DNA of 64,000 bases, from IMG/VR virus record IMGVR_UViG_3300009703_004110, positions 248,001 through 312,000 of that record, one strand, 5' to 3'. Shown here in pieces: positions 1,161 to 54,526 of the stretch. Under the pieces are notes generated by a model. The model ran no database searches and was not told the DNA's origin. It saw only the letters and a program-made list of their open reading frames with translations. A program made the translations under genes and the position numbers. Numbering within the stretch: the stretch's first letter is position 1; each line of letters starts with the position of its first letter.

Positions 1161-1436
1161 TCAGGTCATTTCGTTTAAGTGGTATACCAATTTAAGCCTA
1201 AGTGAATTGGGCAAGTAAGGCTCTACGTTTTCATAAGGTCCAACGTAGCGCCGCCCCTTCGCGTCTAAATTATCACCAATATATTCTTGAACACTCCAAA
1301 TTGGTCTATACCGAAGATCAGTATGCAGAGGGCAAAATACTTGTATGTGTATCCCATAGTAACGAAAACTATAAACCCCGCTGGCCATATGATCTTCCTT
1401 AAAGCCATACTTTAATAATGTATCTTCAAGCGTCAT
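1161..1436 (-). CDS. Hypothetical protein, C-terminal-tag family
   Basis: ATGA overlap with upstream gene; ends LPNSLRLKLVYHLNEMT. Confidence 0.6.
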   Translation of the reverse strand: MTLEDTLLKYGFKEDHMASGVYSFRYYGIHIQVFCPLHTDLRYRPIWSVQEYIGDNLDAKGRRYVGPYENVEPYLPNSLRLKLVYHLNEMT

Positions 1437-2155
1437 AACAAGTCCAGAAAGTATACCATTTCCTCTGTAATATTTGCCGGCAGGTGCGGCTCTATATCGT
1501 AATAGGTTTGGCCGAAATAACATACCGATCTAGGAGTGCTAAGCATCCAGCTCGTCTTTATAGATTCTCGTAATATATCTATTCGAACAAGGCTCCCGTC
1601 AGATAGTGGCGCTATCCAACTAGAACCAGAGCCGTTATATGATTGAAAGCCTATCTTTTTTAAAACCCTTAAGAAAATAACTATAGCTACCGGCTCTACC
1701 ATAAGCTGCACACCTAATAGCTTCTTAGGCAGCGAACCTGCTTGAATAATCTTGCTAAAACCAACCTCTGCAGTTTTTGAAATACCGGCGTCTCTCGGAT
1801 GAACGCCCAAAACTCTTTCCATGTAATCACACATCACATAAAAATGTCTTGCTTCATCATGGACCTGAGAAGTTGCCGCCATTTTGGCATCAAAGTCATC
1901 TAACTCAAAAGCTAAACTTCCAGAGGTCTGCCACGCAGCAAACTCTCCCCATAAAATGAGAGATAAAACTTTTGCTAAAGCTATTTTAACTTCCGGCTCT
2001 AAGGATGGTATGCCATGCTTTTCGATTAGATCATCTAAAACCTGCTTTCCGTCCCAACCATTTCTGTGACCCTTGTGATAGACCGTAGATAAATTTCTAT
2101 AATCATTACTGGAGTTATAGTCATCTACAAATCTATAGTCTATCATAATTTTCAC
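1433..2155 (-). CDS. Truncated ferritin-like (di-iron) domain fused to a C-terminal-tag family segment
   Basis: GEFAA...DEARH...VE ligands present, second ExxH missing; ends LPANITEEMVYFLDLL. Confidence 0.6.
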   Translation of the reverse strand: MKIMIDYRFVDDYNSSNDYRNLSTVYHKGHRNGWDGKQVLDDLIEKHGIPSLEPEVKIALAKVLSLILWGEFAAWQTSGSLAFELDDFDAKMAATSQVHDEARHFYVMCDYMERVLGVHPRDAGISKTAEVGFSKIIQAGSLPKKLLGVQLMVEPVAIVIFLRVLKKIGFQSYNGSGSSWIAPLSDGSLVRIDILRESIKTSWMLSTPRSVCYFGQTYYDIEPHLPANITEEMVYFLDLL

Positions 2156-3177
2156 TCTTCTAATATAACCGTTGTTATCATAGCTGTCATGATTCGATAT
2201 GGGTCCGCATTAGCTCCGGGCCTACGATCTTCAAGATACCCTCTTCCGGCCTCAGAAACATTCCATGGGATTCTTACCGAAGCACTACGATCAGAAACTC
2301 CCCAAGAAAAATTATCATACTTGGCAGTTTCATGATCACCAGTTAAGCGATTTTCATATCCGTCGCCATATGCCTCTAAGTGCCTGTCTATTTGTTCGCC
2401 CAACAGTACGCACCCACGCTCTATTGCTTCCATTCCACCAGCAGACCTCATAGCGTGCGTACTAAAGTTGGTATGCATACCACTTCCATTCCAGTTGCCA
2501 TCAACTGGTTTTTGCTCTAATGAAATATAGTATCCGCTCTCTGTTTGTCTATGCAAAAGATATCGAGATACCCACAGATCATCACACGCCTTTAGAGCGC
2601 CGACCTTAACTCCGCCAATTTGATATTCCCACTGGCCTGGAGCAACTTCAGCATTAATTCCGCAAAGGGAGATTCCCGCATCAAGACACTGTTCTGCATG
2701 AGCATCAACTAACGCTCGTCCATGCGCGTTAGTGCCGCCAACACTACAGTAGTATGGTCCCTGAGGCTCTGGCTCCCCATCCGTATAAGGAAATCCCAAA
2801 GGACGCTTGTCACCTTCTCGCATAATAAAGTATTCTTGCTCAAAACCAACCCTTGGTAATGAAGCCTCTACTTCTTCTAAGACTGCAAGTTTTGATAATG
2901 CATTGCGAGTATTAGACTTATGCGGTGTACCGTCAACATTGAAAACTTCACACATAACAAGATAGCCATTCGTGTATCTGCTGTCTTTATACTGTCTTAC
3001 TGGTCTGAGAATAATGTCGGTGATCTCACCTGGGCCGGCCTTCGCCTGACCGGTTGAAGAACCATCCGCAATCCACTCTTCTTCCATTCCTTTCTTAGAC
3101 AGTAAAAATTTTGTTTTACCTCTAAGCTGGGCGGTTGGCTTTGACCCGTCCAACCAAATATATTCACAACGTATCAT
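2152..3177 (-). CDS. glnII: Glutamine synthetase type II
   Basis: EYIWLDG, DGSSTGQA, GFEQEY, NAEVAPGQWEYQ, WNGSGMHTNFS, YLEDRRP; 341 aa. Confidence 0.95.
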   Translation of the reverse strand: MIRCEYIWLDGSKPTAQLRGKTKFLLSKKGMEEEWIADGSSTGQAKAGPGEITDIILRPVRQYKDSRYTNGYLVMCEVFNVDGTPHKSNTRNALSKLAVLEEVEASLPRVGFEQEYFIMREGDKRPLGFPYTDGEPEPQGPYYCSVGGTNAHGRALVDAHAEQCLDAGISLCGINAEVAPGQWEYQIGGVKVGALKACDDLWVSRYLLHRQTESGYYISLEQKPVDGNWNGSGMHTNFSTHAMRSAGGMEAIERGCVLLGEQIDRHLEAYGDGYENRLTGDHETAKYDNFSWGVSDRSASVRIPWNVSEAGRGYLEDRRPGANADPYRIMTAMITTVILEE

Positions 3178-3184
3178 TTCATCC

Positions 3185-3457
3185 TCAAAACAATTCTATA
3201 TTAAAAAGAATTGTGTTCTGAATATCCTTCGGAAGCTCTGATAAAGCCTCATCAACAGTGGATGGGCGCCAGCGTCGAAACACTCTTTTTCCCCAATAAA
3301 AATTACCAGTTTTAGATATACCAAGTTTCGAATCAAAGATTTCATTCCCATATGGAAAATACTCAAAACTTGTACCTGTCAATTTTAATCTGCCGTGACC
3401 TTTCTCTTTAAAGATATTCAGTTCTAAAAGTTTTTTATATTTTGCTTCCGTCATCAT
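3185..3457 (-). CDS. Hypothetical protein, C-terminal-tag family
   Basis: Ends LPKDIQNTILFNIELF. Confidence 0.65.
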   Translation of the reverse strand: MMTEAKYKKLLELNIFKEKGHGRLKLTGTSFEYFPYGNEIFDSKLGISKTGNFYWGKRVFRRWRPSTVDEALSELPKDIQNTILFNIELF

Positions 3458-3704
3458 TTAGCCTTCCAACATACTTTGTATCCAGCCAATTCTCTACTTC
3501 TTCTACACTTCTGAGATATGTTACCAGAATCTCTACGCTTCTTCCCCATTTTCTTTGGGCATCAAGCTGGCAATATCGAGACTTGGGGTAGCTTCCCCCT
3601 ATGCTCTCTATATGCTTATCACCTGCGTATAGATCTACGGTCCACAAACCTCGTTCATCCAGTCTGGTGACTGCAACTAATTCAGCGTTATCCAACATTT
3701 TCAA
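3435..3704 (-). CDS. Hypothetical protein
   Basis: ORF packed in the operon. Confidence 0.55.
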   Translation of the reverse strand: MKMLDNAELVAVTRLDERGLWTVDLYAGDKHIESIGGSYPKSRYCQLDAQRKWGRSVEILVTYLRSVEEVENWLDTKYVGRLNDDGSKI

Positions 3705-3712
3705 CCTCTTAT

Positions 3713-5014
3713 TTAATAAGTGTTTTTAATACCAATGGCACAACGTACTTTCCCAAGCCCGTCTGCATTTTCTGACCAAGCCGTTCCTATGACTTTCATA
3801 TAGTCTTGGAACGATATATCTTGTGGAGATATGGCAGTGCAATAGTGCCTGCCATTTGAAATTAAAAAGTCTCCATCATTAACTTCACCACTAACCATTA
3901 CTTTGATCTGGCCAGAGAAAGAGAATATCTCTCCGATAAAATTCTCCATATCTCCTACCTCATTACCCACAAGAAAGGCGCTTTTGGTAACAACCATTGG
4001 TGTCCCCGGGCCTTCTTTATAAAACTTATTACCTCTGACATAGCAAATATGTCCTTCTGGTAATCCAAAGAATGGAGCCTGCTCTTCTATAAACTTAGCA
4101 TGTGCGTCACTGATGTTCCATTCTTTTATATCGCCTAATTCGATCCACTCTCCATAATCACCACCGCCAGAGGCGTAAACGGCGCTTCCAGAGTCGCCAA
4201 CCGTTCCTCCGCCGTCAGTTCCACCAACAGTTGTATCCGACTGAAAGGTGACAGTTGAATCAGAATCAGAACCACGAATTCGACCTCTGGTTGTTTGACT
4301 CGCATCTGTGCCAGAAGTAAATCTTGCCCAAACATTAGTTGATCCAGGCTCATTGGCCCTTAATCGTATACGTATTCCATCGGCCTGAGTATCGTCCCAA
4401 TCATTAGCCACATCTAAAACATGACTTGTAGCTCCAGACGTGCTATTCGTGCCATATATCGTTACCATAGTAAGTGGGATCAGATTAACCTGGCCATGAG
4501 ACGCAATACTTGTATTGGCAGAAAAAGATGAAATATCTATATTATAATCAGTCAGTTTTATTACAGAAGCTCCACTTCCACTATCAACAGTATTTGTATG
4601 GGTCGTTTTACTATTTATAATCGTACTAGTTTCCGCTTCTAATTTAACACTTCCACCAGAAGAGTCAAGCTCAATATTGCCCGCAGCGTCTACAGAAATA
4701 TTGTCTGCTGAGTCAATATCTACATTGCCATTTGCATTGATAACTATATTTCCGCCACTCGTTGTAGATAAAGTGAGGGTATTTCCTGCGGTCTGTATAG
4801 TAGTAGCACCCGTTCCAGAGTTCAAACTTAAGAGTGAATCATTAGATATAATGTTATTAACAGTTAACTCACCAGTGACAGTAAGGTCTGTCATTGTACC
4901 ACTGGAAAGCGAAACGGTACCTGCAAGTGTAATAGTATCCGCAGTCAATGTAAGTGCGTTACTACCAGCTACTTCTATATTATGACTTTCTTGATATAGG
5001 TTTCTAGTCGCCAT
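3713..5014 (-). CDS. Tail fibre/spike-like structural protein with a C-terminal intramolecular-chaperone-like (peptidase G2-type) domain
   Basis: Thr/Ser/Gly-rich beta-repeat N-terminus; GGDYGEW...GQIKV...GDFLIS...IGTA. Confidence 0.65.
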   Translation of the reverse strand: MATRNLYQESHNIEVAGSNALTLTADTITLAGTVSLSSGTMTDLTVTGELTVNNIISNDSLLSLNSGTGATTIQTAGNTLTLSTTSGGNIVINANGNVDIDSADNISVDAAGNIELDSSGGSVKLEAETSTIINSKTTHTNTVDSGSGASVIKLTDYNIDISSFSANTSIASHGQVNLIPLTMVTIYGTNSTSGATSHVLDVANDWDDTQADGIRIRLRANEPGSTNVWARFTSGTDASQTTRGRIRGSDSDSTVTFQSDTTVGGTDGGGTVGDSGSAVYASGGGDYGEWIELGDIKEWNISDAHAKFIEEQAPFFGLPEGHICYVRGNKFYKEGPGTPMVVTKSAFLVGNEVGDMENFIGEIFSFSGQIKVMVSGEVNDGDFLISNGRHYCTAISPQDISFQDYMKVIGTAWSENADGLGKVRCAIGIKNTY

Positions 5015-5843
5015 TATCTCCCCAACTTATCTGAAACTTATGTTCTAGTATTTCATTAATACCAGAATCATTACCAGATAAGTTGAGGTAATGTATTATA
5101 TCGTCTTTTTGCATCTTTGAGAGGATGTTTCTTACGACCCGGCCCTCTACCCACTTAAGAGACTTCCCGCTCTTAATCTTATTAGCCGCCTCATCTAAAA
5201 TGGGTTTATAATCAATAAGATGTAATGGCGCAGCCAAGATTGCAGAACTTCTAATTTCCATACTTACATCATCAATAAAGTCTGGATAACAATTAGCTAT
5301 ACCAATGCGCTTAATAGCAGACTTTCTTACCGATGCAACAGGGTCATTTAAAAGCTTCTTAGAACTGGATAAAGAGACGTGCTTCACAGAGGCCTTTCTT
5401 ACTCCGCAATCTTTTGAGCGCAAGCCCCTTTTGCTGGCCATAATTAAAGTTGGACCATGAGCGTTTTGTATCAATACTTTTAGCATTAAGCCGCGCCCAT
5501 GCTTGGCAATAAACTTTGCAAACTCTTTATCCATATAAATAAGCCTGCTGATTGCAGAAGTAATTATAGCCCCATACCAATTCCAAGACAATTCTTCACT
5601 TTCATATACGTCTTCTAGCTCCTCTTTGCTTCTAGTGTCTTTATAACTCGGATAGTCTACCCATATTTTATCTGAAATAATACGTCTAAATTCTTCTTGA
5701 CTGATATCTCTAAGATAATTAACAATTGCATTGACCATTTTAGTTCTCGGCGGCCCCCATTGATGCCTATAACTTTGTGCTTCATTTTCAAACAAAACGG
5801 AGAAGAACTTTTTAGTTTCCTTTCTTGATGTAGTTCGCCTCAA
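5004..5843 (-). CDS. HEAT-repeat-like helical protein
   Basis: D..SVRK.A repeats; C-terminus shared with 9756, 28655 and 42050. Confidence 0.6.
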   Translation of the reverse strand: MRRTTSRKETKKFFSVLFENEAQSYRHQWGPPRTKMVNAIVNYLRDISQEEFRRIISDKIWVDYPSYKDTRSKEELEDVYESEELSWNWYGAIITSAISRLIYMDKEFAKFIAKHGRGLMLKVLIQNAHGPTLIMASKRGLRSKDCGVRKASVKHVSLSSSKKLLNDPVASVRKSAIKRIGIANCYPDFIDDVSMEIRSSAILAAPLHLIDYKPILDEAANKIKSGKSLKWVEGRVVRNILSKMQKDDIIHYLNLSGNDSGINEILEHKFQISWGDNGD

Positions 5844-5844
5844 A

Positions 5845-5991
5845 TTACACTCCCCTAAAGGCTCTCAACAGAATTACCACATAAATCATCAGCATAATTA
5901 TCACCCAAGACGTTACTGAGATTCCTACTTCGAGAATCTTATCTGCAACCTTAAATGTTTTTCTTGCCGCATTCTTTAACAGCCTTCTCAT
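5845..5991 (-). CDS. Small membrane protein (48 aa)
   Basis: SD GAGG; hydrophobic VTSWVIIMLMIYVVILL. Confidence 0.5.
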   Translation of the reverse strand: MRRLLKNAARKTFKVADKILEVGISVTSWVIIMLMIYVVILLRAFRGV

Positions 5992-6004
5992 ATTTACCTC
6001 TTTA

Positions 6005-6968: not shown

Positions 6969-7871
6969 TTAGAACCTCATATTCATATAATAGCTTGTGA
7001 GATCAAGCACAACATCCTTGGCTAACTTAGCAAGGCTAAAGCGAAGCTTGTCTCCAAACTGACGCGGCGGTGTATACTTAATATGTAAAACTTCGCGCTG
7101 CGAAATTGCGTGCATAATGTAATCTTCACTGGTAAGGACATGATCAACTAGTCCCTTGTCCTTGGCATCTATTCCATGCCAATACTCTCCAGTAGCAACT
7201 TCGTCCATATATAGATTCTGACGGAATCTCTTTACGTGATTCTTAAACAAAGTATGCACACGTTCCAGATCACCTTCAAACTTTTCTTCTGCTTCCTTGG
7301 TAATTGGACCAAGAGGACCAACAGTTCTCTTGTACTTACCAGCAGTATACTGCTGATAGTTAACGCCAAGTCGCCCAAGTAAGTCATTAAAGTTCATAAA
7401 CTCAGACACTACACCAATGGATCCAATAATAGCGTATGGTGCCGAGATAATCTTGTCACCAATACATGCCATCATATATCCACCAGAAGCGGCCACCTTG
7501 TCAACCGCTACAGTCAGCGGAATTCCACGGTCCTTTAGCCTCTGTAATTGCGATGCTGCGTATCCATATGCGTGCGCGGCTCCGCCCGGACTTTCAATCC
7601 TGACCAATACTTCGTCCGTAGTTGGATCGGCATTAGAAAGAACGGCGGTAATCTCTTCTGACAGTGCTGTGGCTTGTGTCGCCATAACATCACCGTTGAA
7701 GTCGATAACAAAAAGTCTTCCAGCGCCGCGATGGACTAGTCGTTTGATTGACTTTAAGTCTATACCTGAGCCGGAGCCTTTCGAAAGAATAGCTCCATAA
7801 GCAGCGAATCGGTTATTCATGTTCGTCACCTGAATCGGTGATCGAGTCTTACTAAATAAGAAGTCAAGCAT
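6969..7871 (-). CDS. sohB: S49-family peptidase (SohB-like)
   Basis: ESPGG, DKVAASGGYMMAC, GSIGV, AGKYK. Confidence 0.9.
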   Translation of the reverse strand: MLDFLFSKTRSPIQVTNMNNRFAAYGAILSKGSGSGIDLKSIKRLVHRGAGRLFVIDFNGDVMATQATALSEEITAVLSNADPTTDEVLVRIESPGGAAHAYGYAASQLQRLKDRGIPLTVAVDKVAASGGYMMACIGDKIISAPYAIIGSIGVVSEFMNFNDLLGRLGVNYQQYTAGKYKRTVGPLGPITKEAEEKFEGDLERVHTLFKNHVKRFRQNLYMDEVATGEYWHGIDAKDKGLVDHVLTSEDYIMHAISQREVLHIKYTPPRQFGDKLRFSLAKLAKDVVLDLTSYYMNMRF

Positions 7872-7954
7872 GTAGTTTGCCCTTGTTACAGTCTAGAGTG
7901 AAGTATATCCATCTGATAGAATAAATATACCGGAGTCTTCAAAAATTTCAACCC

Positions 7955-8656: not shown

Positions 8657-8679
8657 GGCAACCTCCTTTAGATAAAAAT

Positions 8680-8714
8680 GAAGCCGGGACAGTTTTTTAC
8701 TTCTGTCCCGGCTT
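8680..8714. terminator. Stem-loop, probable terminator
   Basis: AAGCCGGGACAG / CTGTCCCGGCTT inverted repeat. Confidence 0.55.
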
Positions 8715-10899: not shown

Positions 10900-11244
10900 T
10901 TATAAAAATATATTCATATTGAAGATCAAAAGGTCTGCTACACTACCTTTTATTTCGTCCAAAGCTTCTTCAAGACTAATCATACTAGCTAACAATAAAA
11001 TACCCAAGGCATCATTCTCTTTAATTAAATCTGGTATATGATCTAAGACCTTCTTGTCTTTCATTTTAAATATTTTTAATTCGTCAGGCTTGTCTGTAGA
11101 ATTAATCAAAAATAAGAAGTATGGAGAATTATTAACTATAAAAGTTGTTACCAGCTTAGTGCCACCATTCATTATCTTCTCACCAATCTTGGTAACCTCT
11201 CCAGTACCAAGTAAGCCATCGGCAAGTGACTGTACTTTGATCAT
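10900..11244 (-). CDS. Hypothetical protein, C-terminal-tag family
   Basis: Ends VADLLIFNMNIFL. Confidence 0.6.
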   Translation of the reverse strand: MIKVQSLADGLLGTGEVTKIGEKIMNGGTKLVTTFIVNNSPYFLFLINSTDKPDELKIFKMKDKKVLDHIPDLIKENDALGILLLASMISLEEALDEIKGSVADLLIFNMNIFL

Positions 11245-14277: not shown

Positions 14278-15504
14278 TTAAAACTGCTCTTCTTCTGTTG
14301 AATTCCCCATTGCAAGTGTAGACGATTTGTTATTAGATATAATGCTTTTAACTGTGTCAAAATAATAAGTTCCTACTTCTCGCTGATGCTTAGTGGCCGT
14401 ATAACCTCTTGCTTCTGCTGCAAACTCACGCTCTTGAAGATCTACATATCCGGTCATAGCTTTTTCATTATAGTCAGATGCCAATTCAAACATTGAAAGG
14501 TTTAAAGAATGGAATCCGGCCAAAGTAACAAACTGAAACTTATAACCCATTGAGTTTAACTCTTGACGATACTTAGCAATAGTTTCATCATCGATATTCT
14601 TCTTCCAATTAAAAGATGGTGAGCAATTATATGCCAATATTTTTCCTGGAAATTTTTCATGTATTGCATTGGCAAATCGCCTTGCTTCTTCTAAATCTGG
14701 TGTAGATGTTTCACACCAGATTAAATCACAATATGGCGCATATGCTAAGCCTCTTGATATAGCCTGTTCAATTCCGCCAGAGATTCTATAGAACCCTTCT
14801 GGTGTTCTTTCTCCTGTCATATAAGGATGATCATAAGGATCTATATCTGTCGTAATTAACCGAGCACTGTCAGCATCTGTTCTGGCAATAAGAATAGTTG
14901 GTACATCCATAACATCTGCTGCCAATCTGGCGGCCTTTAATGTCATAATAAAATGAGAAGTTGGAATTAAGACCTTTCCACCTAGGTGGCCACACTTCTT
15001 TTCTGAAGATAACTGATCTTCAAAGTGGACACCAGAGGCTCCAGCCTCTATCATCCCTTTCATAAGCTCAAATGCATTTAACGGGCCTCCAAAGCCCGCT
15101 TCGGCGTCTGCTATAATTGGAACCATCCAGTCTCGACTAAAGTGTCCTTCTGCGCTCTCGATTTGATCAGCGCGTTGCAAAGCTCTATTTATTCGCTTTA
15201 CCACATGTGGAACACTATCTGCTGGATACAAACTCTGATCGGGATACATATGACCAGATAAATTGGCGTCAGCAGCAACCTGCCATCCAGAAAGATATAT
15301 AGCTGGTAAGCCGGCTCTAACTTGCTGCATGGCCTGATTACCTGTTAGTGCACCAAGCGCATATGTTGGCTCATCAGACTGTAAAAGTTTCCATAACTTT
15401 TCTGAGCCAGTCCTCGCTAACGAGTGTTCTATTTTAAAGTTACCTCTCAACCTGTCTACGTCTTCTATAGTCCAATCCCGTTGAACTCCGTCCCATCGAT
15501 CCAT
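14278..15504 (-). CDS. aceA: Isocitrate lyase
   Basis: [30 protein letters not shown]-terminus. Confidence 0.97.
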
Positions 15505-15517
15505 TGCAAAATCTTCC

Positions 15518-17065
15518 TTATCGAACTCCTACCAGTATGTCATAAGCCGACGTGGTTAAAAATTCATCTGCGTCTGCCTGTAAACACAGCTCTTTAAATA
15601 GCTTTTTCGCATCATCATCTTCTGCAACAGATTCTAGAATACTTACTACAAGTTCTGGTGATACAGGCTCTCCAGTGTCTAGAATAGCATTATGTCGCAA
15701 CCACTGCCATACTTGAATGCGTGATATTTCAGCAGTTGCAGCGTCTTCCATTAAATTATTAAGCGGAACACACCCAGAGCCTGAAAGCCAGGCTTTTATA
15801 TATTTATAACCAATTTTAATATTCTTTTCAAGCATTCTTCTTGTACATACACCAACAGGAAACGTCATTAGATCCTGCTCGGAAATGACTCGATTCATAT
15901 TTTTAGAAGTCGATATTTGATTCGGCTGAGGCATATGTTCATCAAAAATATTACGAGCAATCTTAACCAAACCAGGGTGAGCTACCCATGTTCCATCATG
16001 CCCATCTAATACTTCACGTTCTTTATCAATACGGACCTTAATCATTGCTGCTTTATTTGCAGACTTATTATCTTTGATTGGGATCTGCGCAGCCATTCCA
16101 CCCATCGCATGAGCGCCCCTCTTATGACATGTCTGAATAAGAAGTCTGGCATATGAGCGCATAAAGTGATCACTCATTCCTATGTCGTCACGATCAGGAA
16201 ATGGTTCATACGCTCCTAATCTGGTATTCTTTTCTACACTTTTAATTGTACTAAATATATAATCCCAGCGTCCACAGTTTAAACCAACAGAATGATTTCG
16301 CAAAGCGTAAAGAATTTCATGCATTTGGAATGCCGCTGGCAATGTTTCAATTAAAACCGTCGCCCTTATCGACCCATTTGGAATATTAAAGTAATTTTCT
16401 GATCTTGAAAAAATATCATTCCAAAGTTCCGCTTCTCTATAGTGCTCTAATTTTGGCAAATAGAAATAGGGCCTAGTTCCATTGCTTATAAGTTTACTAA
16501 AGTTGTTAGCAAAGTATACTCCAAAATCAAATAATGATGCCGGAACATAATCGGTAAGACCTGTGTCACTATTTGTGAATGTGACGTGCTTTTCTTTTAG
16601 ATGTAATCCGCGAGGTCTTACAAAAAGCGTGGCGGTCTTTTTCTTTAACTTATAAGACCTGCCTTTTGCGTTTTTAAAAGATATCTTTTTATCTACGGCA
16701 TCTTTCAAATTAACTTGACCATTAATACAATTGATCCATGTTGGAGCGTTTGAATCTTCAAAATCAGACATATAAACTTGTGCGCCTGAGTTTAGCGCAT
16801 TAATAACCATCTTCCTAGAAGGAGGGCCGGTAATCTCTACGCGTCTATCAAGTATATCTTCTGGCACATCAGCTACGGTCCAATCAGATTCACGTATTGA
16901 AGCTGTCGAAGCGTCGAAACCACTTATAATAGAGTTTCGACGCTTCGCCATACATTGCTCAATTCTTTCGGTAAATATAATACACAGAAACTTAAGAAAG
17001 TCTGATACTTCGGGCGACAAAACTTTTGCCTGCTCATCTGTTATAACTTCACTAAATTTCAGCAT
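15518..17065 (-). CDS. aceB: Malate synthase A
   Basis: [46 protein letters not shown]. Confidence 0.97.
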
Positions 17066-18501: not shown

Positions 18502-18692
18502 TATGTCTCCAGAAATATATTCAACTCATGTAAGAGTTGCTCTTGTACAGTTTTTGGTGAATTATCAAATACGGTTTGAAACGGGACAATATCCCAAGGA
18601 CGGGATGACCGACCCTTCGTATTTGAATTCATAACTGCTCTTCTGGTAATAAATATCGTCTCCTGCCTCAAAAGCAGGCGTGTAAATACCAT
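18501..18692 (-). CDS. Hypothetical protein, C-terminal-tag family
   Basis: Ends SPKTVQEQLLHELNIFLET; start uncertain. Confidence 0.5.
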   Translation of the reverse strand: MVFTRLLLRQETIFITRRAVMNSNTKGRSSRPWDIVPFQTVFDNSPKTVQEQLLHELNIFLET

Positions 18693-37019: not shown

Positions 37020-37439
37020 CTATACTCTGTCGATGGTAACTGGTACATTACTTTTCTTGGCGATATTGATCGTCATATATGTTCCAGAGTACCTTGTCTT
37101 TCCGGTCCAAAAAGCGTGCATCTTATCTACTGATGAAACTATAAGTTCATTTCTAACCCTATAGTCATTCTTACCCTCAGAGCCTTTTGGGGCGTTTATT
37201 CTAACATCGCTGTTCTTGATTGATTCCCAATCAACAGCCTTCCTATTGTATGGTACAACTGCAATAACATACAGTCCGCTCTCTTTAGCTTTCTTGGCGA
37301 CCAAAGCATCGGCGCCTTCACATGCTCCGTGATATACAATAGCGTTATCCGGCAGAGACCTAATCCATGCCGTAATGGCATCATCTAATAACGGTGTGAC
37401 TGTTCTTGTTCCGGTCATACCAAACTTAGGCCGTATCAT
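37020..37439 (-). CDS. SLOG-superfamily (DprA/YspA-like) protein
   Basis: GMTGTR, HGACEGAD, YRVRNELIV, SGTYMTI. Confidence 0.8.
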   Translation of the reverse strand: MIRPKFGMTGTRTVTPLLDDAITAWIRSLPDNAIVYHGACEGADALVAKKAKESGLYVIAVVPYNRKAVDWESIKNSDVRINAPKGSEGKNDYRVRNELIVSSVDKMHAFWTGKTRYSGTYMTINIAKKSNVPVTIDRV

Positions 37440-37867
37440 AATACATCCAAATGATACACAAGCTCTTCCTGTAGCTTTTTTGGAATATTCGCATGGAATA
37501 TATCTTCTATCGGAATTTCTTCAAACCCAGGGGTTGACAGAGTATGTCCAGAAAATACAATTCCACTATTCTTCTTTTCTCTTAAGAGGTGTATTTTATC
37601 TGCTATATGATTATGGGCCAGCCACACTGACGTTCCTTTGATTTTGTATAAGCTTAACTTTAGAACCTGGTTTGGAAGTGCCCTATGTACTCTATGTATT
37701 TCCATAGGCTCACCCCAATTGGCATATCCGAAATCTTCTGAAACCTCATCAAACATATGTTTAATTATCTTTTGTTTTTCAAGGTTATTCAGAAGCTTCA
37801 ATTTATATCTCCAGTGGCAACCGCCCAGGGAACCGAATCCCCGCAGCCCCAGGGTTTGGAATCCCAA
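37436..37867 (-). CDS. Hypothetical protein, C-terminal-tag family
   Basis: Ends IPKKLQEELVYHLDVL. Confidence 0.65.
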   Translation of the reverse strand: MGFQTLGLRGFGSLGGCHWRYKLKLLNNLEKQKIIKHMFDEVSEDFGYANWGEPMEIHRVHRALPNQVLKLSLYKIKGTSVWLAHNHIADKIHLLREKKNSGIVFSGHTLSTPGFEEIPIEDIFHANIPKKLQEELVYHLDVL

Positions 37868-37897: not shown

Positions 37898-38284
37898 TTA
37901 TACGAAGAGATCTAAATTAAACAGAAAAGTTTCTTTATCTTTTTCATCAATAATTTGCTCAAGAATATCCTGAGCATCTAATGATCCTTCCCTTAGCCCG
38001 CAGTCCTGCTCAACTATTACGTGATACCACCGAATTCGTCCACCTTCTCGAACCTCTATCCAAATAGAGGGATCGCTTTTAAGCTCAATAGAGAACTTTG
38101 TCAGATGCATATAGAACTCATATACAAGATCGTTTTCTGACATTAATTCATAATCAAGTTCTGTTTTCACTTTACTAGTGGAAACTCTGATACTTTTCGG
38201 ATTGAATAAGCCGGTATCAAAATACCGGCTTATCTTTTTAATCTTGCCACAGGCACTATGAAACTTGGCGTCCCATAGCATCAT
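37898..38284 (-). CDS. Hypothetical protein, C-terminal-tag family
   Basis: Ends KETFLFNLDLFV. Confidence 0.65.
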   Translation of the reverse strand: MMLWDAKFHSACGKIKKISRYFDTGLFNPKSIRVSTSKVKTELDYELMSENDLVYEFYMHLTKFSIELKSDPSIWIEVREGGRIRWYHVIVEQDCGLREGSLDAQDILEQIIDEKDKETFLFNLDLFV

Positions 38285-45185: not shown

Positions 45186-45651
45186 TGAATTTCTCCATAT
45201 TGAATAAGATTGTATCTACTAAGGCAGAGTTCTTGGTATTATTTAGAACCTCATCTGGTTCTATTTCATAACATATATAATACAACTTATCAGAATGGAG
45301 AATAAAGTTAGGACTCTGAGCAAGAATACTGTCCAAAGCTTTAGAAACTTCTGCGGCTTTTTTCTCAGCCTTCTCTCTTCTTCCAATTGCCTTATGATGA
45401 TTCTTCTTTTTTCTTTTACCATTTAGGTTGCGAACATTACGTAAAGCTTTCTCATGAGCTTTGCGTACTTCAGTTATTTTATGAGTATATCTATCTGCCC
45501 ATTCACGATATGCTTCATGATTTCTGAAGATGCGCTTTTCAATTCTAACCCAATTAATCTCAAATAACTTATGCCAGTAATAAGATTTCGTGTTGGCGAT
45601 AATTATTCCGTGTTCATTAAAAAACTCGCATCCCTGCACGAACGATGGCAT
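45175..45651 (-). CDS. Hypothetical protein, C-terminal-tag family
   Basis: Ends TILFNMEKFNES; start uncertain. Confidence 0.6.
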   Translation of the reverse strand: MPSFVQGCEFFNEHGIIIANTKSYYWHKLFEINWVRIEKRIFRNHEAYREWADRYTHKITEVRKAHEKALRNVRNLNGKRKKKNHHKAIGRREKAEKKAAEVSKALDSILAQSPNFILHSDKLYYICYEIEPDEVLNNTKNSALVDTILFNMEKFNES

Positions 45652-45723: not shown

Positions 45724-46209
45724 TTAAGAAGCTGAGTGAATTCCTGAATTGATATCATTTTTAACTCGCGTTAGAACTTCACCAAGCCAATTCTTTCCCT
45801 GCCAGGTGCTACGGCTTTGTGCTCGCTTATCATCCTTAGCTAATCCAATTCCCCAAATTTTATCATAAGGGCTGGCTTCAACCAAAATTTTATCACCTGT
45901 TGCCAATAGAATCTCTTTAAGCTTTTCATCCTGTGTAAATTTCGCCATGCTAGCACGATAAACAATATCTTTAGCAGCGCTCTGCCACTTGCCCACATTA
46001 AAGTTTTTAACTTTGCGGCCAAGGGCCTTTTGTTCTCTTGGACTATTTGTCTTCATAATCTTACGAAGAGATTTAGCGTCCTTGAACATTCTGGCCTTCT
46101 CTGCCATCATATATTGTTCTGCGCAATTATACTTAACACCGTTAATTACAAAAGAAGATGGATGCCATTGACTAAACGGTCCGCTCCAAAAGAATTCAAA
46201 TTCTTCCAT
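45724..46209 (-). CDS. NADAR (YbiA-like) protein
   Basis: FSQW, AEQYMMAEKA, LVEASPYDKIWGIG, G.NWLG. Confidence 0.93.
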   Translation of the reverse strand: MEEFEFFWSGPFSQWHPSSFVINGVKYNCAEQYMMAEKARMFKDAKSLRKIMKTNSPREQKALGRKVKNFNVGKWQSAAKDIVYRASMAKFTQDEKLKEILLATGDKILVEASPYDKIWGIGLAKDDKRAQSRSTWQGKNWLGEVLTRVKNDINSGIHSAS

Positions 46210-46218
46210 TTTAAATCC

Positions 46219-46701
46219 CTATATAAATTTGTCAAGATTGTAAACTATTGATTCCCCAGCCCTCTTTGGTATTACCCCGAGAACATCTTCAATTGGAACC
46301 TCTACAATAAAGTCGTTGCCCTTATCGAAAGACATTTGGACAAAGACTCTTTTCTTTTCTTGTCTATTAGGATCTCTTTCTATTATATACAAAAAGTCTG
46401 TGCCACGTATATAATAAGCTTCTGTTCCGTTTAGAAATCCAATCAGTGGCATAAAACAATTAATATCTTCTGCTAATGGGTATTCTTTTTTAATTCGCTC
46501 TTTAACACGCGGATTGGCATAGGATAGGTAAAGATCATAATATGCCAGAGTTCTAATTAGAATGGTTATAAAACGTCTAATCGTTCGCTTTTGTAATTTA
46601 TACATTAGCTCGTTTTTGTTCATTCTTTTAGTGGCCCTCTTATTGTGGGTTCTTATCACCTGAATCAGAATCCATAAGATATTATATACATTAACTTTCA
46701 T
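46219..46701 (-). CDS. Hypothetical protein, C-terminal-tag family
   Basis: Ends IPKRAGESIVYNLDKFI. Confidence 0.65.
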   Translation of the reverse strand: MKVNVYNILWILIQVIRTHNKRATKRMNKNELMYKLQKRTIRRFITILIRTLAYYDLYLSYANPRVKERIKKEYPLAEDINCFMPLIGFLNGTEAYYIRGTDFLYIIERDPNRQEKKRVFVQMSFDKGNDFIVEVPIEDVLGVIPKRAGESIVYNLDKFI

Positions 46702-46829: not shown

Positions 46830-47144
46830 TTAAACAAACAGGTCAAAGTGAAAGATCACTTGTGATTTTATATTTGGTGGAAGCATTTCGAAGAATTGCT
46901 CAATAGGAATTTCTACCCTGTCGCTATAAGCTTGTCCAAAATAATATCTTACTAAAGGACTCCCATCAGAATTTATTCCGCATATTTCAATTAGTAAGTG
47001 TGTTCCATTGACTTTATAAAAGCCGCGATATATCTGAGAAAGAAAGGGCAAATGATGGGCTTCTTCGGCCCCATCAACTACGCCATATCTATTCGGTATA
47101 TTCCTATAGCTCACCTTGCTATAAGCCTCTCTAAGTATTCCCAC
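46830..47144 (-). CDS. Hypothetical protein, C-terminal-tag family
   Basis: Ends LPPNIKSQVIFHFDLFV. Confidence 0.65.
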   Translation of the reverse strand: MGILREAYSKVSYRNIPNRYGVVDGAEEAHHLPFLSQIYRGFYKVNGTHLLIEICGINSDGSPLVRYYFGQAYSDRVEIPIEQFFEMLPPNIKSQVIFHFDLFV

Positions 47145-47659: not shown

Positions 47660-47706
47660 AATACACCTCGACTATATTCTATTACCTGTCAGCTTTTCTT
47701 TCTAAG

Positions 47707-49519: not shown

Positions 49520-50078
49520 TTGCTCTCTCCATAAGCCTTTTGCTAATCTTCTTCAACTTCTTATTAAAACGACTTCGTTTAAGACTGCTAGCGTGCTTAA
49601 GGAGAGTGATTCCATCTAAATGGTCAATCTCATGTTGGATAATAACTGCAACAAACCCTGTGAAAATTTCTTCTACAAAGTCGCCGGTCACTGTTTGATA
49701 TCTGACAGATACTTCATCTGGCCTTGATACTTTGACGGCCATTGAGGGCAAGGATAAGCATCCTTCTTCTGACGTGATCTCTGTTTCTGATGCTTCAAGA
49801 ATTACTGGATTGACGAGCTTTAATGCTCCTGAGGCATATCCTCCACCATAAGCTGATGCCGGAGAATAGTCTCCAACATGCCCTGTATCAATCACAATTA
49901 ATCTGCGACTATCACCAACTTGTGGCGCAGCTAATCCCACACCATTGTTGCCGTACATAGTTATCAGCATTTCAGACATATATGCGTCCAGATCATCTCC
50001 GAACTCATCTTCGGTTACATCACGAGCAACCTGATTCAAAATTGTACTGCCTGGAAATCCAGGAATTAAAATTCTCAT
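49509..50078 (-). CDS. def: Peptide deformylase
   Basis: GVGLAAPQVG, EGCLS, QHEIDHLDG. Confidence 0.96.
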   Translation of the reverse strand: MRILIPGFPGSTILNQVARDVTEDEFGDDLDAYMSEMLITMYGNNGVGLAAPQVGDSRRLIVIDTGHVGDYSPASAYGGGYASGALKLVNPVILEASETEITSEEGCLSLPSMAVKVSRPDEVSVRYQTVTGDFVEEIFTGFVAVIIQHEIDHLDGITLLKHASSLKRSRFNKKLKKISKRLMERANAG

Positions 50079-50107
50079 AATTACTTTCCTTTATCCAATT
50101 TCTTTTA

Positions 50108-50194
50108 TGGCGGAGAGTACAGGATTCGAACCTGTGAGGCTGTTACGCCGACGAGTTAGCAACCCGTTCCCTTAAACCGCTCGGGCAACTCTCC
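50108..50194 (-). tRNA. tRNA-Ser(GCT)
   Basis: Loop TTGCTAA, long V arm, G73, CCA. Confidence 0.93.
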
Positions 50195-50199
50195 ATACT

Positions 50200-50493
50200 T
50201 TATTCTATATATTCAAATATGATATATTCACGAGACCATTCAGGAAAAGCTCTGCGTATCAGTTCTTTGACTTTAAATTCTTTATTAGATTGCTGCTTAT
50301 AGCTTTTAAACTTCTTACGCAATTTAACAGGAATAGTTAATCGCAATTGCTGGCCGCCACCTTCTGGGCAGACATAATATTCTAATCTAATGCGTTGACC
50401 AAATCGACTATAGCCGTTCATTACTTCGTGAGCAATTGATTCAATACGAGGCAGATAGTCTAAAACAATGTCGTGCGCTTTACTAGCTGTCAT
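50200..50493 (-). CDS. Hypothetical protein
   Basis: Likely start MTASKA. Confidence 0.5.
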   Translation of the reverse strand: MTASKAHDIVLDYLPRIESIAHEVMNGYSRFGQRIRLEYYVCPEGGGQQLRLTIPVKLRKKFKSYKQQSNKEFKVKELIRRAFPEWSREYIIFEYIE

Positions 50494-50686
50494 CAGATAC
50501 CTGCTTCTCAGCAATATCTTCCGGCATACTTTCAAGTCGCTTTAGCTCTAGCAGCCTATCATGCAGATACTTTAGTCCGGTAAGTCTCTCCATGTGAAGC
50601 AGGTAAGGCACATTTTGCGAGACAACTAGTTGCTCTAAATCGCCCAACACAAGTTCCGCTTTTTCAAATTCTGTTTCAGCACTCAT
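50483..50686 (-). CDS. Hypothetical protein
   Basis: SD GGAG then MSAETE. Confidence 0.55.
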   Translation of the reverse strand: MSAETEFEKAELVLGDLEQLVVSQNVPYLLHMERLTGLKYLHDRLLELKRLESMPEDIAEKQVSDDS

Positions 50687-50812
50687 AATATTCTCCAAAT
50701 AGGTGCGGCAAAGATTAGGGATCCAAACCCCTTGAAAACAACCTAATCTTTGCCTACCTCTTTGAATAGTACCATGCAGAGTAACTTCGTTCAGAAAAAT
50801 ATTCTGTCTTTC

Positions 50813-52483
50813 TTACTCGTATGCATTCATGCTGCCACTTTCAATCTTGGCTGCTTCGACTTCCAACTTCTCTCGCATCAGTGGGCTTAGAATATCACAC
50901 TTAGCAGGACGCTTTGCCCAATCAGCATTAAGACGCTCACGCATTTGATCGAAGTCTTCGAAGACATAATCAACAGGTCCACAGTCCCAGATGACCTCAA
51001 GCAAGTCTGTCTCCATACGATAATCTTCCCAGCTTGTTCCTGTTGCAGGATATACCTTCAACTCAGAACCAACGGAATTAACGATGGTAAGTCCGGGCAG
51101 GCTCATCTTGCTAAGGTCACGACTCGGCTTCTTCATAACATCACGAACCGTTCCGTCCGCATACTCGATACGACAAAGCTTGGTTGCACACTTTAGTGTG
51201 TCACGGTTCTGCTTCTGTAGCAAACCACCGCCCATACCAAAGGCGACATTCTGAGCACTATAACCAGCATTCAAAACGGCACGGAGAATAGCGGCAAGGA
51301 TGCGAGCATCAATACCGTCTCCCTGGATTACAGCCGCTCCGTTAAGAACCTTGTAACCCTTGCTGTTAACTGTCACACCGAATGCTGCCTCGCAAGCTTC
51401 CAGTCCATCTAGAACACATCTAACAGGATCGCCAGAGTCAGGACGTACTACGAATAGAATTCCCTGCTTCTGCGCCAGTGGTGCAATCTGAGGAAGAATC
51501 GTCCAAAGGAACGATGCTCGATCAGGATTATTATAGTTATAAGAATCAGCAACACAGCTAAGGATTGCTCCCTCAGGAGTGATTCCAATAAGATGCTCAA
51601 CTGCGGCCATTTCCTTAGGCCAAGCTGTCATCACACTGTGCTCAGATGCAAGTACCGATTCACCAACCGGACGACCTTCGTTCCACTTAGTTGCAAGCCA
51701 ACCAGCAGTCATGGTATCAGTACCTTCAAAACTTAGAAGGTGACCGGCACCAGTAGTCATCGCAGTTTCTGCGCTCGATACTCCACGCGAACCAAAATCA
51801 TGCAAACGGCTGGGAAGCAAGAAGTCAAGCTCTGCTTCAACAGACTCATCAAATGCGGCACGAATCAGACGCCAAACATGACGGCTCTTAGTAGCAGTAA
51901 CGGACGGGCTCCACAGACGCATCAACGCAGTCTCAAGCCAAGTCACCAGATACACAAACTCATCGTCTGTTAGATTATCTGTGCTTGCCGTAATTGTAAA
52001 GCAAGGAACATTCGGATAAACCACTGTTCCATCACGTAGCGCCTTAATCTTGATGGGAATATATCCACCATTATCTACGACCTTCTGCCATAGATGCTTG
52101 GGCCAACTCATCGGAGTCTTTGCGACACCATGAGTCTTTAGATAGGTCTCTGCTTCATCTACTTCAAACTGCTCAATTCGATGAGAGATAACAGTTTCAA
52201 ATAGGTAGCGCATACCAAAGAAAACGATTCGCTCGTCCTCTGCTGTGAGTGGGCCACGGAATGTAAAGTACGCAGTCATTGACTTTGCGTCAGGATACAT
52301 CTGCCAGTGTCCAGTCTTATAAGTATCCGTGTCCAGTAGGAACGGGATACGTCGAGGGTCGCTTTTTAGAATGTCAATCTTAAGCTGTTCCATCAGATCC
52401 GCTAAGGCATCTGATCCTGCTGCGCCGTGTATCTGTAAGATATTACATTCTGCTTCTCTAATAATATCATTTATATTTCTCAT
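50813..52483 (-). CDS. nadV: Nicotinamide phosphoribosyltransferase
   Basis: TDTYK..H..MYP, LHDFGSRG, ASEHS, VRPDSGDP, IQGDG, FGMGGGLLQ. Confidence 0.95.
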   Translation of the reverse strand: MRNINDIIREAECNILQIHGAAGSDALADLMEQLKIDILKSDPRRIPFLLDTDTYKTGHWQMYPDAKSMTAYFTFRGPLTAEDERIVFFGMRYLFETVISHRIEQFEVDEAETYLKTHGVAKTPMSWPKHLWQKVVDNGGYIPIKIKALRDGTVVYPNVPCFTITASTDNLTDDEFVYLVTWLETALMRLWSPSVTATKSRHVWRLIRAAFDESVEAELDFLLPSRLHDFGSRGVSSAETAMTTGAGHLLSFEGTDTMTAGWLATKWNEGRPVGESVLASEHSVMTAWPKEMAAVEHLIGITPEGAILSCVADSYNYNNPDRASFLWTILPQIAPLAQKQGILFVVRPDSGDPVRCVLDGLEACEAAFGVTVNSKGYKVLNGAAVIQGDGIDARILAAILRAVLNAGYSAQNVAFGMGGGLLQKQNRDTLKCATKLCRIEYADGTVRDVMKKPSRDLSKMSLPGLTIVNSVGSELKVYPATGTSWEDYRMETDLLEVIWDCGPVDYVFEDFDQMRERLNADWAKRPAKCDILSPLMREKLEVEAAKIESGSMNAYE

Positions 52484-52513
52484 GAGTCTATTCTCCTATT
52501 TGTTTTGCGGGAT

Positions 52514-52723
52514 CTATTCCCTAATTATGATGATGGTTCTCTTTCCATCTTTAATGCCCCTTCCCTTAACAGGCTTGGCATTTGTTGGGTTATCATAGTA
52601 ACCGCCTCTTCCATCGTCTATCCACTCGCCTCTATTACAGTTGCAAGTCAATACAGGTCCGTCTCCGCATCTACCATCATAGAGTGCTCCGGCACCACAT
52701 ACACTACACTTATAGTCTCTCAT
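52514..52723 (-). CDS. Small Zn-ribbon protein
   Basis: CSVC...C..C. Confidence 0.5.
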   Translation of the reverse strand: MRDYKCSVCGAGALYDGRCGDGPVLTCNCNRGEWIDDGRGGYYDNPTNAKPVKGRGIKDGKRTIIIIRE

Positions 52724-52747
52724 ACTCCTTTTCCTTCGGGTCTATTC

Positions 52748-53881
52748 CTAGTATGCCATGCTTTCGATAATATCAAGGTGATCCTCAAACAAAAGGTGTG
52801 GCATATCATTAATGACTTCGCTTAGAGCGAACCATTGTACTCTGGTTACTTCCCTCTCAAATCCACGCTCGGGCTTAAGTTGGGGAATCTTAAACCATGA
52901 AGGAACATCCCATCGAAACGCATGTGTGAGCACACGCCCACGCTGGCTTCTCTTTGGGTGATCGAAACGGTCTTCCTTAGTCAACCATTCGTCACGTACC
53001 TTCATTCGTGTCTCTTCCTGTAGCTCGCGCTTTGCGCCAGCAACAGCCGTCTCATCCGCCTCAAGGAATCCTCCTGGCAGAGCCCACAGTCCCTTGCCGG
53101 GATGTGAGCGACGACGAACAAGTAGAATGTTACCCTGATGGATAACTACATTATCTGTCGTCATAAACTGTAGCTTATGACCAGCGGGGCTAATTTGCCT
53201 AATCCTTTCTCCGGACTCATCAATGATCCAGAGATACTGATCTTTTGGCAACCCTTCTAATGGGTCATACTTGCTTCGATACTTTAGAATATGCTTATGT
53301 CCAGCGGCCATGTTCTTGCCGTGCTCTGTGCCTATCCATTGGGACAGGAGCTCTGAAGTAGATGAGGCAACAAGGCTCATCCAGTCATTGGACTCGTTCA
53401 TATAAAGTCCGTGCATAATTTCTGCATATCGGCTTTCAATATCTTCAATAACCTCTACCTCAGAATTCCATCGAGGGAAGCTATTTAAATAGTCAGTTTC
53501 TTCATGCCTTCTATCTACACCATACAAAGTGATATTGCAATCACTTAGTCGGTGATCTGGCCCATAGGCTGACTTAATTCCTTCTGAGACAGCCTCTTGA
53601 ACCTTAGTAAGAAAACGTGTCTTATTATACCAGTAATCACGAGCCCTTCTGTATTCGACCTTGTGATAATCTAAACCGTAATCTGCAAGGGCCTCATCAA
53701 TCATGTTTGATCGTTCTGCCGCTACAAAGGGGTCTCTGGAGTCACGGGCTGTATCAGATGAGCCAAGGATAACTACTACAATGTTATTATCACTAATGGC
53801 CGGGCTGAATAGCCGCTCAATTTGTTCTAGGGTCACAGGCTGAAATCGCCCAATGATTACGCCTACATTTGGATTCTGCAT
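52748..53881 (-). CDS. NMN adenylyltransferase-like/Nudix bifunctional protein (NadM-Nudix), HxGH motif degenerate
   Basis: IGRFQP, GS...RDPF..AER; GLWALPGGF...RELQEET; FEDH. Confidence 0.88.
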   Translation of the reverse strand: MQNPNVGVIIGRFQPVTLEQIERLFSPAISDNNIVVVILGSSDTARDSRDPFVAAERSNMIDEALADYGLDYHKVEYRRARDYWYNKTRFLTKVQEAVSEGIKSAYGPDHRLSDCNITLYGVDRRHEETDYLNSFPRWNSEVEVIEDIESRYAEIMHGLYMNESNDWMSLVASSTSELLSQWIGTEHGKNMAAGHKHILKYRSKYDPLEGLPKDQYLWIIDESGERIRQISPAGHKLQFMTTDNVVIHQGNILLVRRRSHPGKGLWALPGGFLEADETAVAGAKRELQEETRMKVRDEWLTKEDRFDHPKRSQRGRVLTHAFRWDVPSWFKIPQLKPERGFEREVTRVQWFALSEVINDMPHLLFEDHLDIIESMAY

Positions 53882-53958
53882 AAGAGTCTATCTCCTAATT
53901 ATATTATTTACCACTTAACTACGACGTCGTCTCCCGAGTCGTTATCTCTCTGATCTGA

Positions 53959-54180
53959 CTAAGTACTTCTGCTGACAGTAAAGCCGTTCTCTTCAAGGGC
54001 CGCTTTGATGCCCAAATAAACACGGCCTCTATAGCTGTAGTCTATTTTCATTAGCGACACGCTTACACTTGTTCTGCCGCTTGCGGCCGCCCGCCTAATC
54101 TTTTCGTAAATAGACTCGGGATCTAGCTGCTGTGTTGCCGCATATTTATCGTTTAATTCTTTTGCCTCACTGGCTTTCAT
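53959..54180 (-). CDS. Hypothetical protein
   Basis: Small ORF. Confidence 0.55.
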   Translation of the reverse strand: MKASEAKELNDKYAATQQLDPESIYEKIRRAAASGRTSVSVSLMKIDYSYRGRVYLGIKAALEENGFTVSRST

Positions 54181-54217
54181 TTTATTCTCTCTTCGGCGTC
54201 TGTCGCCTATTTTTATC

Positions 54218-54526
54218 TTACTTTTTTGCGGAAAGAATATCTAAATAAAATAATATCTCCAAGTCATCGTCGCCAAGACCTGACATGAATTCTTCCCCAT
54301 CGATTGTAGTCGCACAGCCTGTGTGATTAATTTTAACAAAAGTGACTTTGCCGTGATCTGATACAAAACCAACCTTATCAGAATCCATAATAACAACATT
54401 CATACGCCTTGGCGACGTAACTCTAACTTTTCGACTATTGATTAACGAAATATAAACGAGCATGGCCCGGCTCTTTTTCTTAGCACAATATTCTATAAAA
54501 GAAAGCTTCCGCCCAATCTTTATCAT
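54218..54526 (-). CDS. Hypothetical protein, C-terminal-tag family
   Basis: Ends LEILFYLDILSAKK. Confidence 0.55.
   Translation of the reverse strand: MIKIGRKLSFIEYCAKKKSRAMLVYISLINSRKVRVTSPRRMNVVIMDSDKVGFVSDHGKVTFVKINHTGCATTIDGEEFMSGLGDDDLEILFYLDILSAKK

Follow-up and report, generated by a model that had tools for sequence, protein, structure and literature searches.

A small-protein family with a constant C-terminal module and a hypervariable remainder in an uncultured huge phage

We examined a 64,000-nucleotide stretch of phage DNA (the window; bases 248,001-312,000 of the 332,270-bp single-contig virus record IMGVR_UViG_3300009703_004110) and, within it, 11 small open reading frames (ORFs) whose products differ at the N-terminus and end alike. 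The genes of the window lie almost all on the minus strand and its GC content is ~41%. They encode an isoleucyl-tRNA synthetase, two class-II aminoacyl-tRNA synthetases, EF-Tu and a Thg1-like protein, as well as nicotinamide phosphoribosyltransferase, an adenylyltransferase/Nudix protein, a glutamine-synthetase-like protein and a head maturation protease. With its synthetases, EF-Tu, metabolic genes, head maturation protease and 19 tRNA genes, the window is therefore part of a huge phage.

An earlier note, made from the nucleotide sequence, had listed 11 otherwise dissimilar proteins with a common C-terminal string, and all 11 ORFs, each on the minus strand, translate exactly as listed there. 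A regular expression fitted to these tails, [LIVMF][LIVMF][FYH][NHYFE][LIMF][DNE][LIVMKE][FLM], matches 22 times in the whole genome, 22 of 22 on the coding (minus) strand and 19 of them no more than six residues from the C-terminus, and it has no match in the 1,539 plus-strand ORFs. Enrichment over shuffled C-termini had been set beforehand as the test of the claim: when each of the 573 minus-strand ORFs was shuffled 1000 times, the mean was 0.03 C-terminal matches and the maximum 2, against the 19 observed. Outside the window, in sequence independent of the tails to which the expression had been fitted, 8 C-terminal matches were observed and 0.02 expected. The scan of the genome with a profile, which the earlier note had proposed, bore the claim out as well. 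A hidden Markov model (HMM) of the last 28-32 residues, iterated over the ORFs of the genome at a threshold of E<1e-4, recovered 25 members, comprising the 11 already listed, no others in the window, and 14 elsewhere; the best match in the reversed-sequence control had E=0.1. The copies cluster at 155-158 kb of the genome, where six stand in tandem, and at 249-251, 285-286, 293-295 and 314-318 kb. The codons for the conserved residues vary among the copies (Leu as TTA, CTG, TTG or CTT, Asp as GAC or GAT, Phe as TTT or TTC), and selection therefore falls on the protein and not on the DNA; the C-terminal signal acts at the protein level.

The eight or nine residues first noticed are only part of the conserved unit. 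It spans ~30 residues, with the consensus ISFEEVFEELPEEIKEELIFNLDLF, and its secondary structure runs from a last β-strand through a helix and a proline turn to a second helix. Over the ~30 columns of 115 aligned proteins, the module reads as an aromatic residue, then [IV]-[SPT]-F-E-E-V-F-E-x-L-P-x-x-I-K-E-x-L-L-F-[NH]-L-D-L-F and usually one further residue. The most informative columns are F/Y25, N/H26, D28, F30, E9, P16, L27, K/Q/R20 and E/D21, five of which are polar (E9, K/Q/R20, E/D21, N/H26 and D28). The [LI]P that the earlier note had seen ahead of several tails is borne out, the proline being present in 69% of the 115 aligned members. The module, whose median net charge is -4, is acidic in a protein that is otherwise neutral on average, and it ends 0-3 residues from the C-terminus in ~70% of 89 non-redundant members. 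The best-scoring member, which lies outside the window (G000:C1:35195-35704), carries the module internally, at residues 78-105 of 169, and its extension ends with a second F-L-D-L-F string and an acidic tail. The N-terminal part of this protein is kept in three proteins from other sources (P0005, P0018 and P0033; E from 1e-8 to 1e-16), while their extensions differ.

The N-termini do differ, as had been claimed, to the point that pairwise BLAST and phmmer, jackhmmer and hhalign detect no sequence similarity across the set. With the module removed, the best BLASTP E-value among the 25 members of this genome is 0.06, and phmmer and jackhmmer searches with the N-terminal parts connect only a few small subfamilies. 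The 89 non-redundant members have a median length of ~100 aa and most measure 77-125 aa. A second motif, a hairpin of the form h.h.G[TS].hh, occurs in the N-terminal parts of 16 of 87 members, three of them in the window, compared to 3 of 655 background ORFs, and F and W columns that precede the module are conserved in full-length alignments. A 101-aa protein encoded outside the window (G000:C1:45549-45854) has a perfect G-T hairpin motif (YKLLGTDYIFY) but ends in a basic C-terminus unlike the module; this protein may be a divergent relative in which the module was lost or replaced.

We predicted the structures of two window proteins with AlphaFold2 from family alignments. The model of the protein encoded at 46830-47144 (P0007) has a predicted local distance difference test (pLDDT) score of 85 and a predicted template modelling (pTM) score of 0.73, and that of the protein encoded at 3185-3457 has a pLDDT of 81 and a pTM of 0.68. 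The order of elements is the same in both models: a helix comes first, then five or six strands, then a helix-turn-helix, with no low-confidence linker between them. In the P0007 model, the G-T motif forms the hairpin turn between strands 32-35 and 40-47, and the V-E-I with which the module begins forms strand 67-69, from which helices 71-77, 80-88 and 90-93 follow without a linker. Confidence is highest in the module. The common fold is thus predicted to be a single α+β domain in which an N-terminal helix is followed by an antiparallel sheet of five to six strands and, at the C-terminus, by a helix-Pro-helix hairpin. A homodimer prediction for P0007 scored 0.00 with an uncertain fold, which speaks neither for binding nor against it.

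The predicted fold has no recognisable relative, even though a small two-layer α+β sandwich is in itself a common arrangement. Foldseek searches with the first model against the PDB, AlphaFold DB clusters, BFVD and the ESM Atlas returned nothing significant (best E 0.06-0.4; template modelling scores mostly <0.5, the best 0.51), and the look-alikes that the ESM Atlas gives for a window protein were uninformative, since the Atlas's own model has a pLDDT of 0.48. An exhaustive VIA-align comparison gave a best Z of 4.6 (HIV Vif), followed by PipX at 4.1 and KA1 domains at 3.8, for one model, and a best Z of 4.9, with several restriction-endonuclease-like proteins, for the other; all are below the stated noise level of 7-8, and the top matches disagree between the two models. 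The KA1 domain, PipX, the α/β domain of HIV Vif and the restriction-endonuclease-like core share with the family an antiparallel sheet with helices on one face. They differ from it in that the Z values are only 3-4.9 and depend on the model, and in that no PD-(D/E)xK catalytic residues are conserved in the family. A PD-(D/E)xK nuclease-like fold was accordingly set aside (Z 4.9 in one model only; strands with no conserved acidic or Lys columns), as was a HicA-like arrangement suggested by eye from an 'LLxxxGF' helix followed by strands, for which there was no supporting Pfam match.

The uniform size, the enrichment of the G-T hairpin, the F and W columns and the two matching models argue for a single small domain. 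On balance, we read the set as a hyperdivergent single-domain paralog family with a constant C-terminal third, and not as a linear tag grafted onto unrelated effectors; the shared 'tag' would be the last strand and the hairpin, the only part held constant, and the first two-thirds would have diverged past sequence recognition. The earlier note's suggestion of a modular signal attached to variable effector domains thus holds in part. The C-terminal element is constant beside variable remainders, non-random and selected as protein, but a tag on unrelated effectors does not fit a module strand that is predicted in the sheet with no linker. A plain paralog family, which that note had named as the contrary case, is what the architecture and the predicted fold suggest, but whole-length sequence homology is not found. 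That the 11 window proteins, and all 25 in the genome, are paralogs belonging to a single, hitherto undescribed family of small proteins of ~90 residues is a reading to which we assign, function included, a probability of roughly 0.6. As a statement of what the family is, it is held with high confidence; its functional part, that these are small cytoplasmic binders or inhibitors with a role in host takeover or counter-defence, is tentative.

Several points weigh against this reading. Common descent of the whole domain is argued from size, one enriched motif and two models built from a poorly aligned multiple sequence alignment, and the burial of the hairpin is judged from the confidence values and the missing linker rather than from coordinates. 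An hhalign comparison of the N-terminal parts from this genome with those from elsewhere was null (E=0.3). Some members have 60-130 additional N-terminal residues, and one subfamily has a C-terminal extension, with 20-64 residues beyond the module. The function, finally, is deduced solely from how the genes behave in genomes.

Table 1. Positions of the family members and of other features (window coordinates unless a locus, contig or record is named).
Feature	Position or locus	Strand	Remarks
Family member, ~91 aa	1161-1436	-	Module ~1173-1247; HMM E=1.6e-6; longer ORF to 1523
Chimeric ORF, 240 aa	1433-2155	-	Residues 1-158 AurF-like ferritin-type N-half; last ~80 aa family domain; module 1436-1519
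Family member, 90 aa	3185-3457	-	Module 3188-3271; E=4.6e-9; AlphaFold2 model
Head maturation protease gene	6969-7871		
Family member, up to 137 aa	10900-11313	-	Module 10906-10980; E=1.8e-6; directly upstream of tRNA cluster
Isocitrate lyase and malate synthase genes	14278-17065	-	Adjacent; glyoxylate shunt pair
Short family member, 63 aa	18501-18692	-	Module 18513-18596; E=2e-9; stop overlaps start of class-II aminoacyl-tRNA synthetase gene
Family member, 121-143 aa	37436-37867	-	Module 37439-37516; E=9.5e-7; G-T hairpin motif
Family member, 128 aa	37898-38284	-	Module 37904-37972; E=2.1e-5
Family member, 158 aa	45175-45651	-	Extra basic helical N-terminal stretch; module 45187-45270 plus 3 residues; E=2.2e-6
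Family member, up to 160 aa	46219-46701	-	Module 46225-46302; G-T hairpin; TAG stop; E=3.2e-7
Family member P0007, 94-104 aa	46830-47144	-	Module 46836-46916; G-T hairpin; E=6.6e-9; AlphaFold2 model
Family member, 102 aa	54218-54526	-	Module 54233-54316 plus 4 residues; E=1.7e-5
tRNA gene, anticodon CUA	55576-55651	-	ARAGORN label 'Pyl'; amber suppressor
Array in other phage	L010, 12-kb locus		~24 of 33 adjacent genes are family members
Array in other phage	L007, 20-kb locus		~10 family members
IMG/VR record (44% complete)	147.7 kb		16 family members
Array in other phage	16-kb locus of 253-kb contig		14 family members
Array in other phage	16-kb locus of 104-kb contig		8 family members

The start sites of some members require comment (Table 1). 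For the ORF 1161-1523, the most likely start is the ATG at 1436, which gives 91 aa and an ATGA overlap with the stop of the upstream gene. Public gene calls give 121 aa for 37436-37867 and 94 aa for 46830-47144, and both proteins are probably shorter than first listed. The member 46219-46701 ends with TAG (46219-46221), and the next gene (45724-46209, minus strand), whose N-terminus we take, by eye only, to be NADAR/YbiA-like, has its ATG in the same frame, 12 nt further on. Suppression of the amber stop would fuse the two, while the in-frame arrangement may be due to chance (1 in 3).

The family extends well beyond this genome. Searching 1.84 billion representative proteins with the module profile gave 61 matches at E<=1e-3, ~40 of them from elsewhere; these external matches measure 49-156 residues and have the module at the extreme C-terminus in nearly all cases. 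Five long repetitive matches (P0003, P0012, P0024, P0039 and P0053) were rejected as false positives, since they are nSTAND NTPases or proteins of low complexity. Among 5.8 billion sequences, a profile built from the external proteins found 73 proteins, all of 49-125 aa, none of them named and none with a Pfam domain. In all, metagenomic large-phage contigs encode more than 100 additional small proteins (49-125 aa) in which the module occupies the same place. These contigs resemble large phages in their one-directional small-gene arrays near RNA ligase, DNA ligase, RNase H and lysozyme genes, and in the richest of them most of the adjacent genes belong to the family (Table 1). Scans of 10, 74 and 34 members against Pfam, PHROGs and NCBIfam revealed no recurrent family, the PDB holds no match by profile, tblastn with a typical member found no real match in cultured phages, and a literature text search for the motif found no paper. 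Most members have tRNA, aminoacyl-tRNA synthetase and metabolic genes as neighbours or stand in arrays made up purely of small genes, rather than within structural modules, and we saw no obvious signal peptide or membrane segment in them.

For comparison we used a relative with 46-86% protein identity, a 224.6-kb TARA Oceans scaffold. The two are collinear at this level of identity over the genes that run from the head maturation protease up to the glutamine-synthetase-like one, while the one syntenic pair of family genes (3185-3457 and L013 8651-8980) is only 31% identical over 68 residues. At the DNA level, the flanking genes are ~70% identical, while the syntenic family genes cannot be aligned by blastn. 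On the downstream side of the ferritin-like gene, the window phage and the TARA relative differ in their sets of small genes, family members among them. The family genes thus stand in tandem, turn over between related phages and diverge faster than their neighbours.

The boundary of this variable region is marked by the chimeric 240-aa ORF. Its residues 1-158 are 86% identical to P0064, an intact 281-aa homolog in the TARA relative; the homology stops at window position ~1672 and the frame runs on into a nearly complete family domain. The 3' half of the ferritin-like gene, which would encode the second EXXH half, was not found within positions 1-5000 of the window. With this identity, the in-frame junction and the missing second half, the fusion is most plausibly a chimera left by a deletion at the edge of the variable region, and not a designed tagging of an enzyme; judged from its sequence, the AurF-like enzyme is probably inactive.

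Tandem layout, turnover and fast evolution are the signature of accessory host-interaction genes, and tandem expansion, turnover and divergence faster than that of the neighbours make the family members candidates for host takeover or counter-defence. In the mechanism that we propose, the constant acidic hairpin would supply the hydrophobic core of the fold and would probably also form a common interaction face through the conserved E, K/Q/R, E/D, N/H and D residues. The hypervariable helix and sheet surface would give each copy a different specificity and would diversify under host pressure, so that the array would be a set of small binders or inhibitors with which the phage takes over the host or counters its defences.

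The alternative that survives best is that the constant C-terminal hairpin docks all members on one hub, such as a protease, chaperone or polymerase of the host or a phage assembly, while the variable part recruits or blocks targets. The very asymmetric conservation, with ~30 constant residues beside hypervariable remainders, is what such docking would produce; the five conserved polar or charged positions exceed what a hydrophobic core needs; the module is acidic and kept at the very C-terminus in most members; and the in-frame chimera links it to half of a ferritin-like protein. However, the β-strand that opens the module belongs to the sheet, the models predict no linker, and the conserved polar residues could instead serve as caps or salt bridges within the molecule. 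The subfamily that continues past the module shows that the C-terminus need not be free, the chimera has the look of an accidental deletion next to the variable region, and no candidate hub was identified. We regard docking as unlikely. Its more elaborate form, in which the acidic helix-Pro-helix end would plug 25 hypervariable paralogs into one host or phage machine (a protease, a chaperone or a replisome component) as an adaptor array and a bacterial-virus counterpart of the F-box/PRANC adaptors of eukaryotic viruses, built on a fold without a recognisable relative, seems more doubtful again.

The nearest analogy for such a hub-docking family is found in poxviruses and in ubiquitin biology. 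The PRANC proteins of poxviruses are families of C-terminal F-box-like adaptors, and UBM is a helix-Leu-Pro-helix motif that binds ubiquitin. Both resemble the present family in a constant C-terminal helix-(L)P-helix with an 'LPxxIxxE..' pattern that is joined to variable parts. Unlike them, the family gives only insignificant Pfam matches, and its host is presumably bacterial, so that no SCF or ubiquitin system is expected. One of 74 members matches the F-box model of Pfam, at 12.4 bits (E=0.16) where the cut-off is 20.5, and two of 74 match the UBM model, with a best E of 0.01; the PDB chain 2kwv compared with the family profile gives E=2.1. Neither assignment was retained.

A capsid-loading signal, by which the module would direct the proteins into the prohead for injection, is very unlikely. 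Three members lie within a few kb of the head maturation protease gene (6969-7871), and the internal proteins of T4 are likewise a hypervariable set with only a short targeting peptide in common. Their capsid targeting element consists of ~10 N-terminal residues, is unstructured and is cleaved by the prohead protease. The present family shares with these proteins the combination of dissimilar small proteins, a variable locus and one short conserved terminal element; in contrast to them, its element comprises ~30 C-terminal residues that are predicted to fold into the domain, no conserved protease site is evident, and most members are away from the structural genes.

The earlier note had also likened the tail loosely to sliding-clamp motifs, a likeness that does not stand up to the alignment and the models. 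Here the terminal [NH]-L-D-L-F would bind a β- or gp45-type clamp. The family does share a short, hydrophobic, L-D-L-F-like C-terminal string with β-clamp- and gp45-binding peptides (QL[SD]LF; C-terminal tails in T4), and the phage has a DnaE-type Pol III alpha (G000:C1:194606-195397, L015; open frame of 1136 aa) and no match to a family A or B polymerase. The models DNA_pol3_beta_3 (the DnaN C-domain) and gp45-slide_C (the gp45-type clamp) find no match in its genome; the phage may thus rely on the host clamp or on a very divergent one. But the first position of the motif is N in 52%, H in 37% and Y in 3% of the members, with Q outside the top five residues, and the motif is predicted to be helical (pLDDT 79-92), continuous with the preceding helix and embedded in a 30-residue conserved fold element, where clamp-binding peptides are extended, flexible tails. 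Since 25 clamp binders in one genome would also be without precedent, we find this explanation hardly credible. That the conserved 3' ends are promoters, terminators or recombination sites of the downstream genes, with the likeness of the peptides as a by-product, is suggested by the tight packing of the genes and by a motif that always adjoins the next one, but it is practically negligible given the free variation of synonymous codons, the conservation of the amino-acid profile across phages and family genes that blastn cannot align.

Returning to the paralog family, its closest parallels are the lineage-specific multigene families known from the hyperplastic small-gene regions of T4-like phages and from large eukaryotic viruses. 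With these it shares tandem arrays, many paralogs, fast divergence, gain and loss between close relatives and the lack of an enzymatic signature. It differs from them in that it is absent from Pfam, PHROGs, NCBIfam and the cultured phages searched, in that its divergence is unusually lopsided, with only the last ~30 residues recognisable, and in that its copy number is high for a phage, with 25 per genome here and ~24 of 33 adjacent genes elsewhere. We therefore describe it as a protein family that is new and unannotated and has expanded in one group of large, uncultured phages; in kind it is a lineage-specific accessory multigene family.

As for the genomic setting, the source run is labelled as a subsurface metagenome and the phage is uncultured. 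The stretch that forms the window is contained in a single contig of that run, and a second subsurface sample contains identical fragments at low depth; a search for RNA runs found none. IMG/VR rates the 332-kb record as 99% complete and classes it as a 'provirus' excised from a longer contig; one protein of the record is listed in a protein database on a 420,521-bp contig. Given the many cell-like genes, the trimming of the record may have removed genuine phage sequence. Neither megablast nor tblastn with the window genes found a close cultured relative, and a search with a 526-aa window protein as the query found no related loci. In the TARA relative, the gene at L013 18158-19270 is assigned by precomputed annotation to the Pfam family Gad2 (anti-Gabija) and lies ~6 kb past the nearest family member.

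The 19 tRNA genes, all on the coding strand, lie at positions 10605-63226 of the window in a dense translation-related region in which three aminoacyl-tRNA synthetase genes, EF-Tu and the Thg1-like tRNA-His guanylyltransferase stand beside them. One of the tRNAs is the amber suppressor (Table 1). TAG is the stop codon in 42 of 311 long coding-strand ORFs and the large genes are intact under table 11, so that no other genetic code was applied. The window also contains the two adjacent genes of the glyoxylate shunt, a pairing of isocitrate lyase and malate synthase that is reported from a minority of huge phages (bioRxiv 10.1101/2025.02.27.640493).

Huge phages hold hundreds of genes of no known function, and the family organises a part of these, since one recognisable family accounts for at least 25 of the 573 coding-strand ORFs here and, in related phages, makes up the majority of some arrays. 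Its simple 25-residue signature can be converted into a domain model for annotation. The arms-race-like behaviour of its members provides a concrete set of candidates for new host-takeover or counter-defence proteins, and a structure would be informative given a predicted fold with no clear relative. Should the constant end indeed dock all members onto one partner, they would represent a new type of phage adaptor system.

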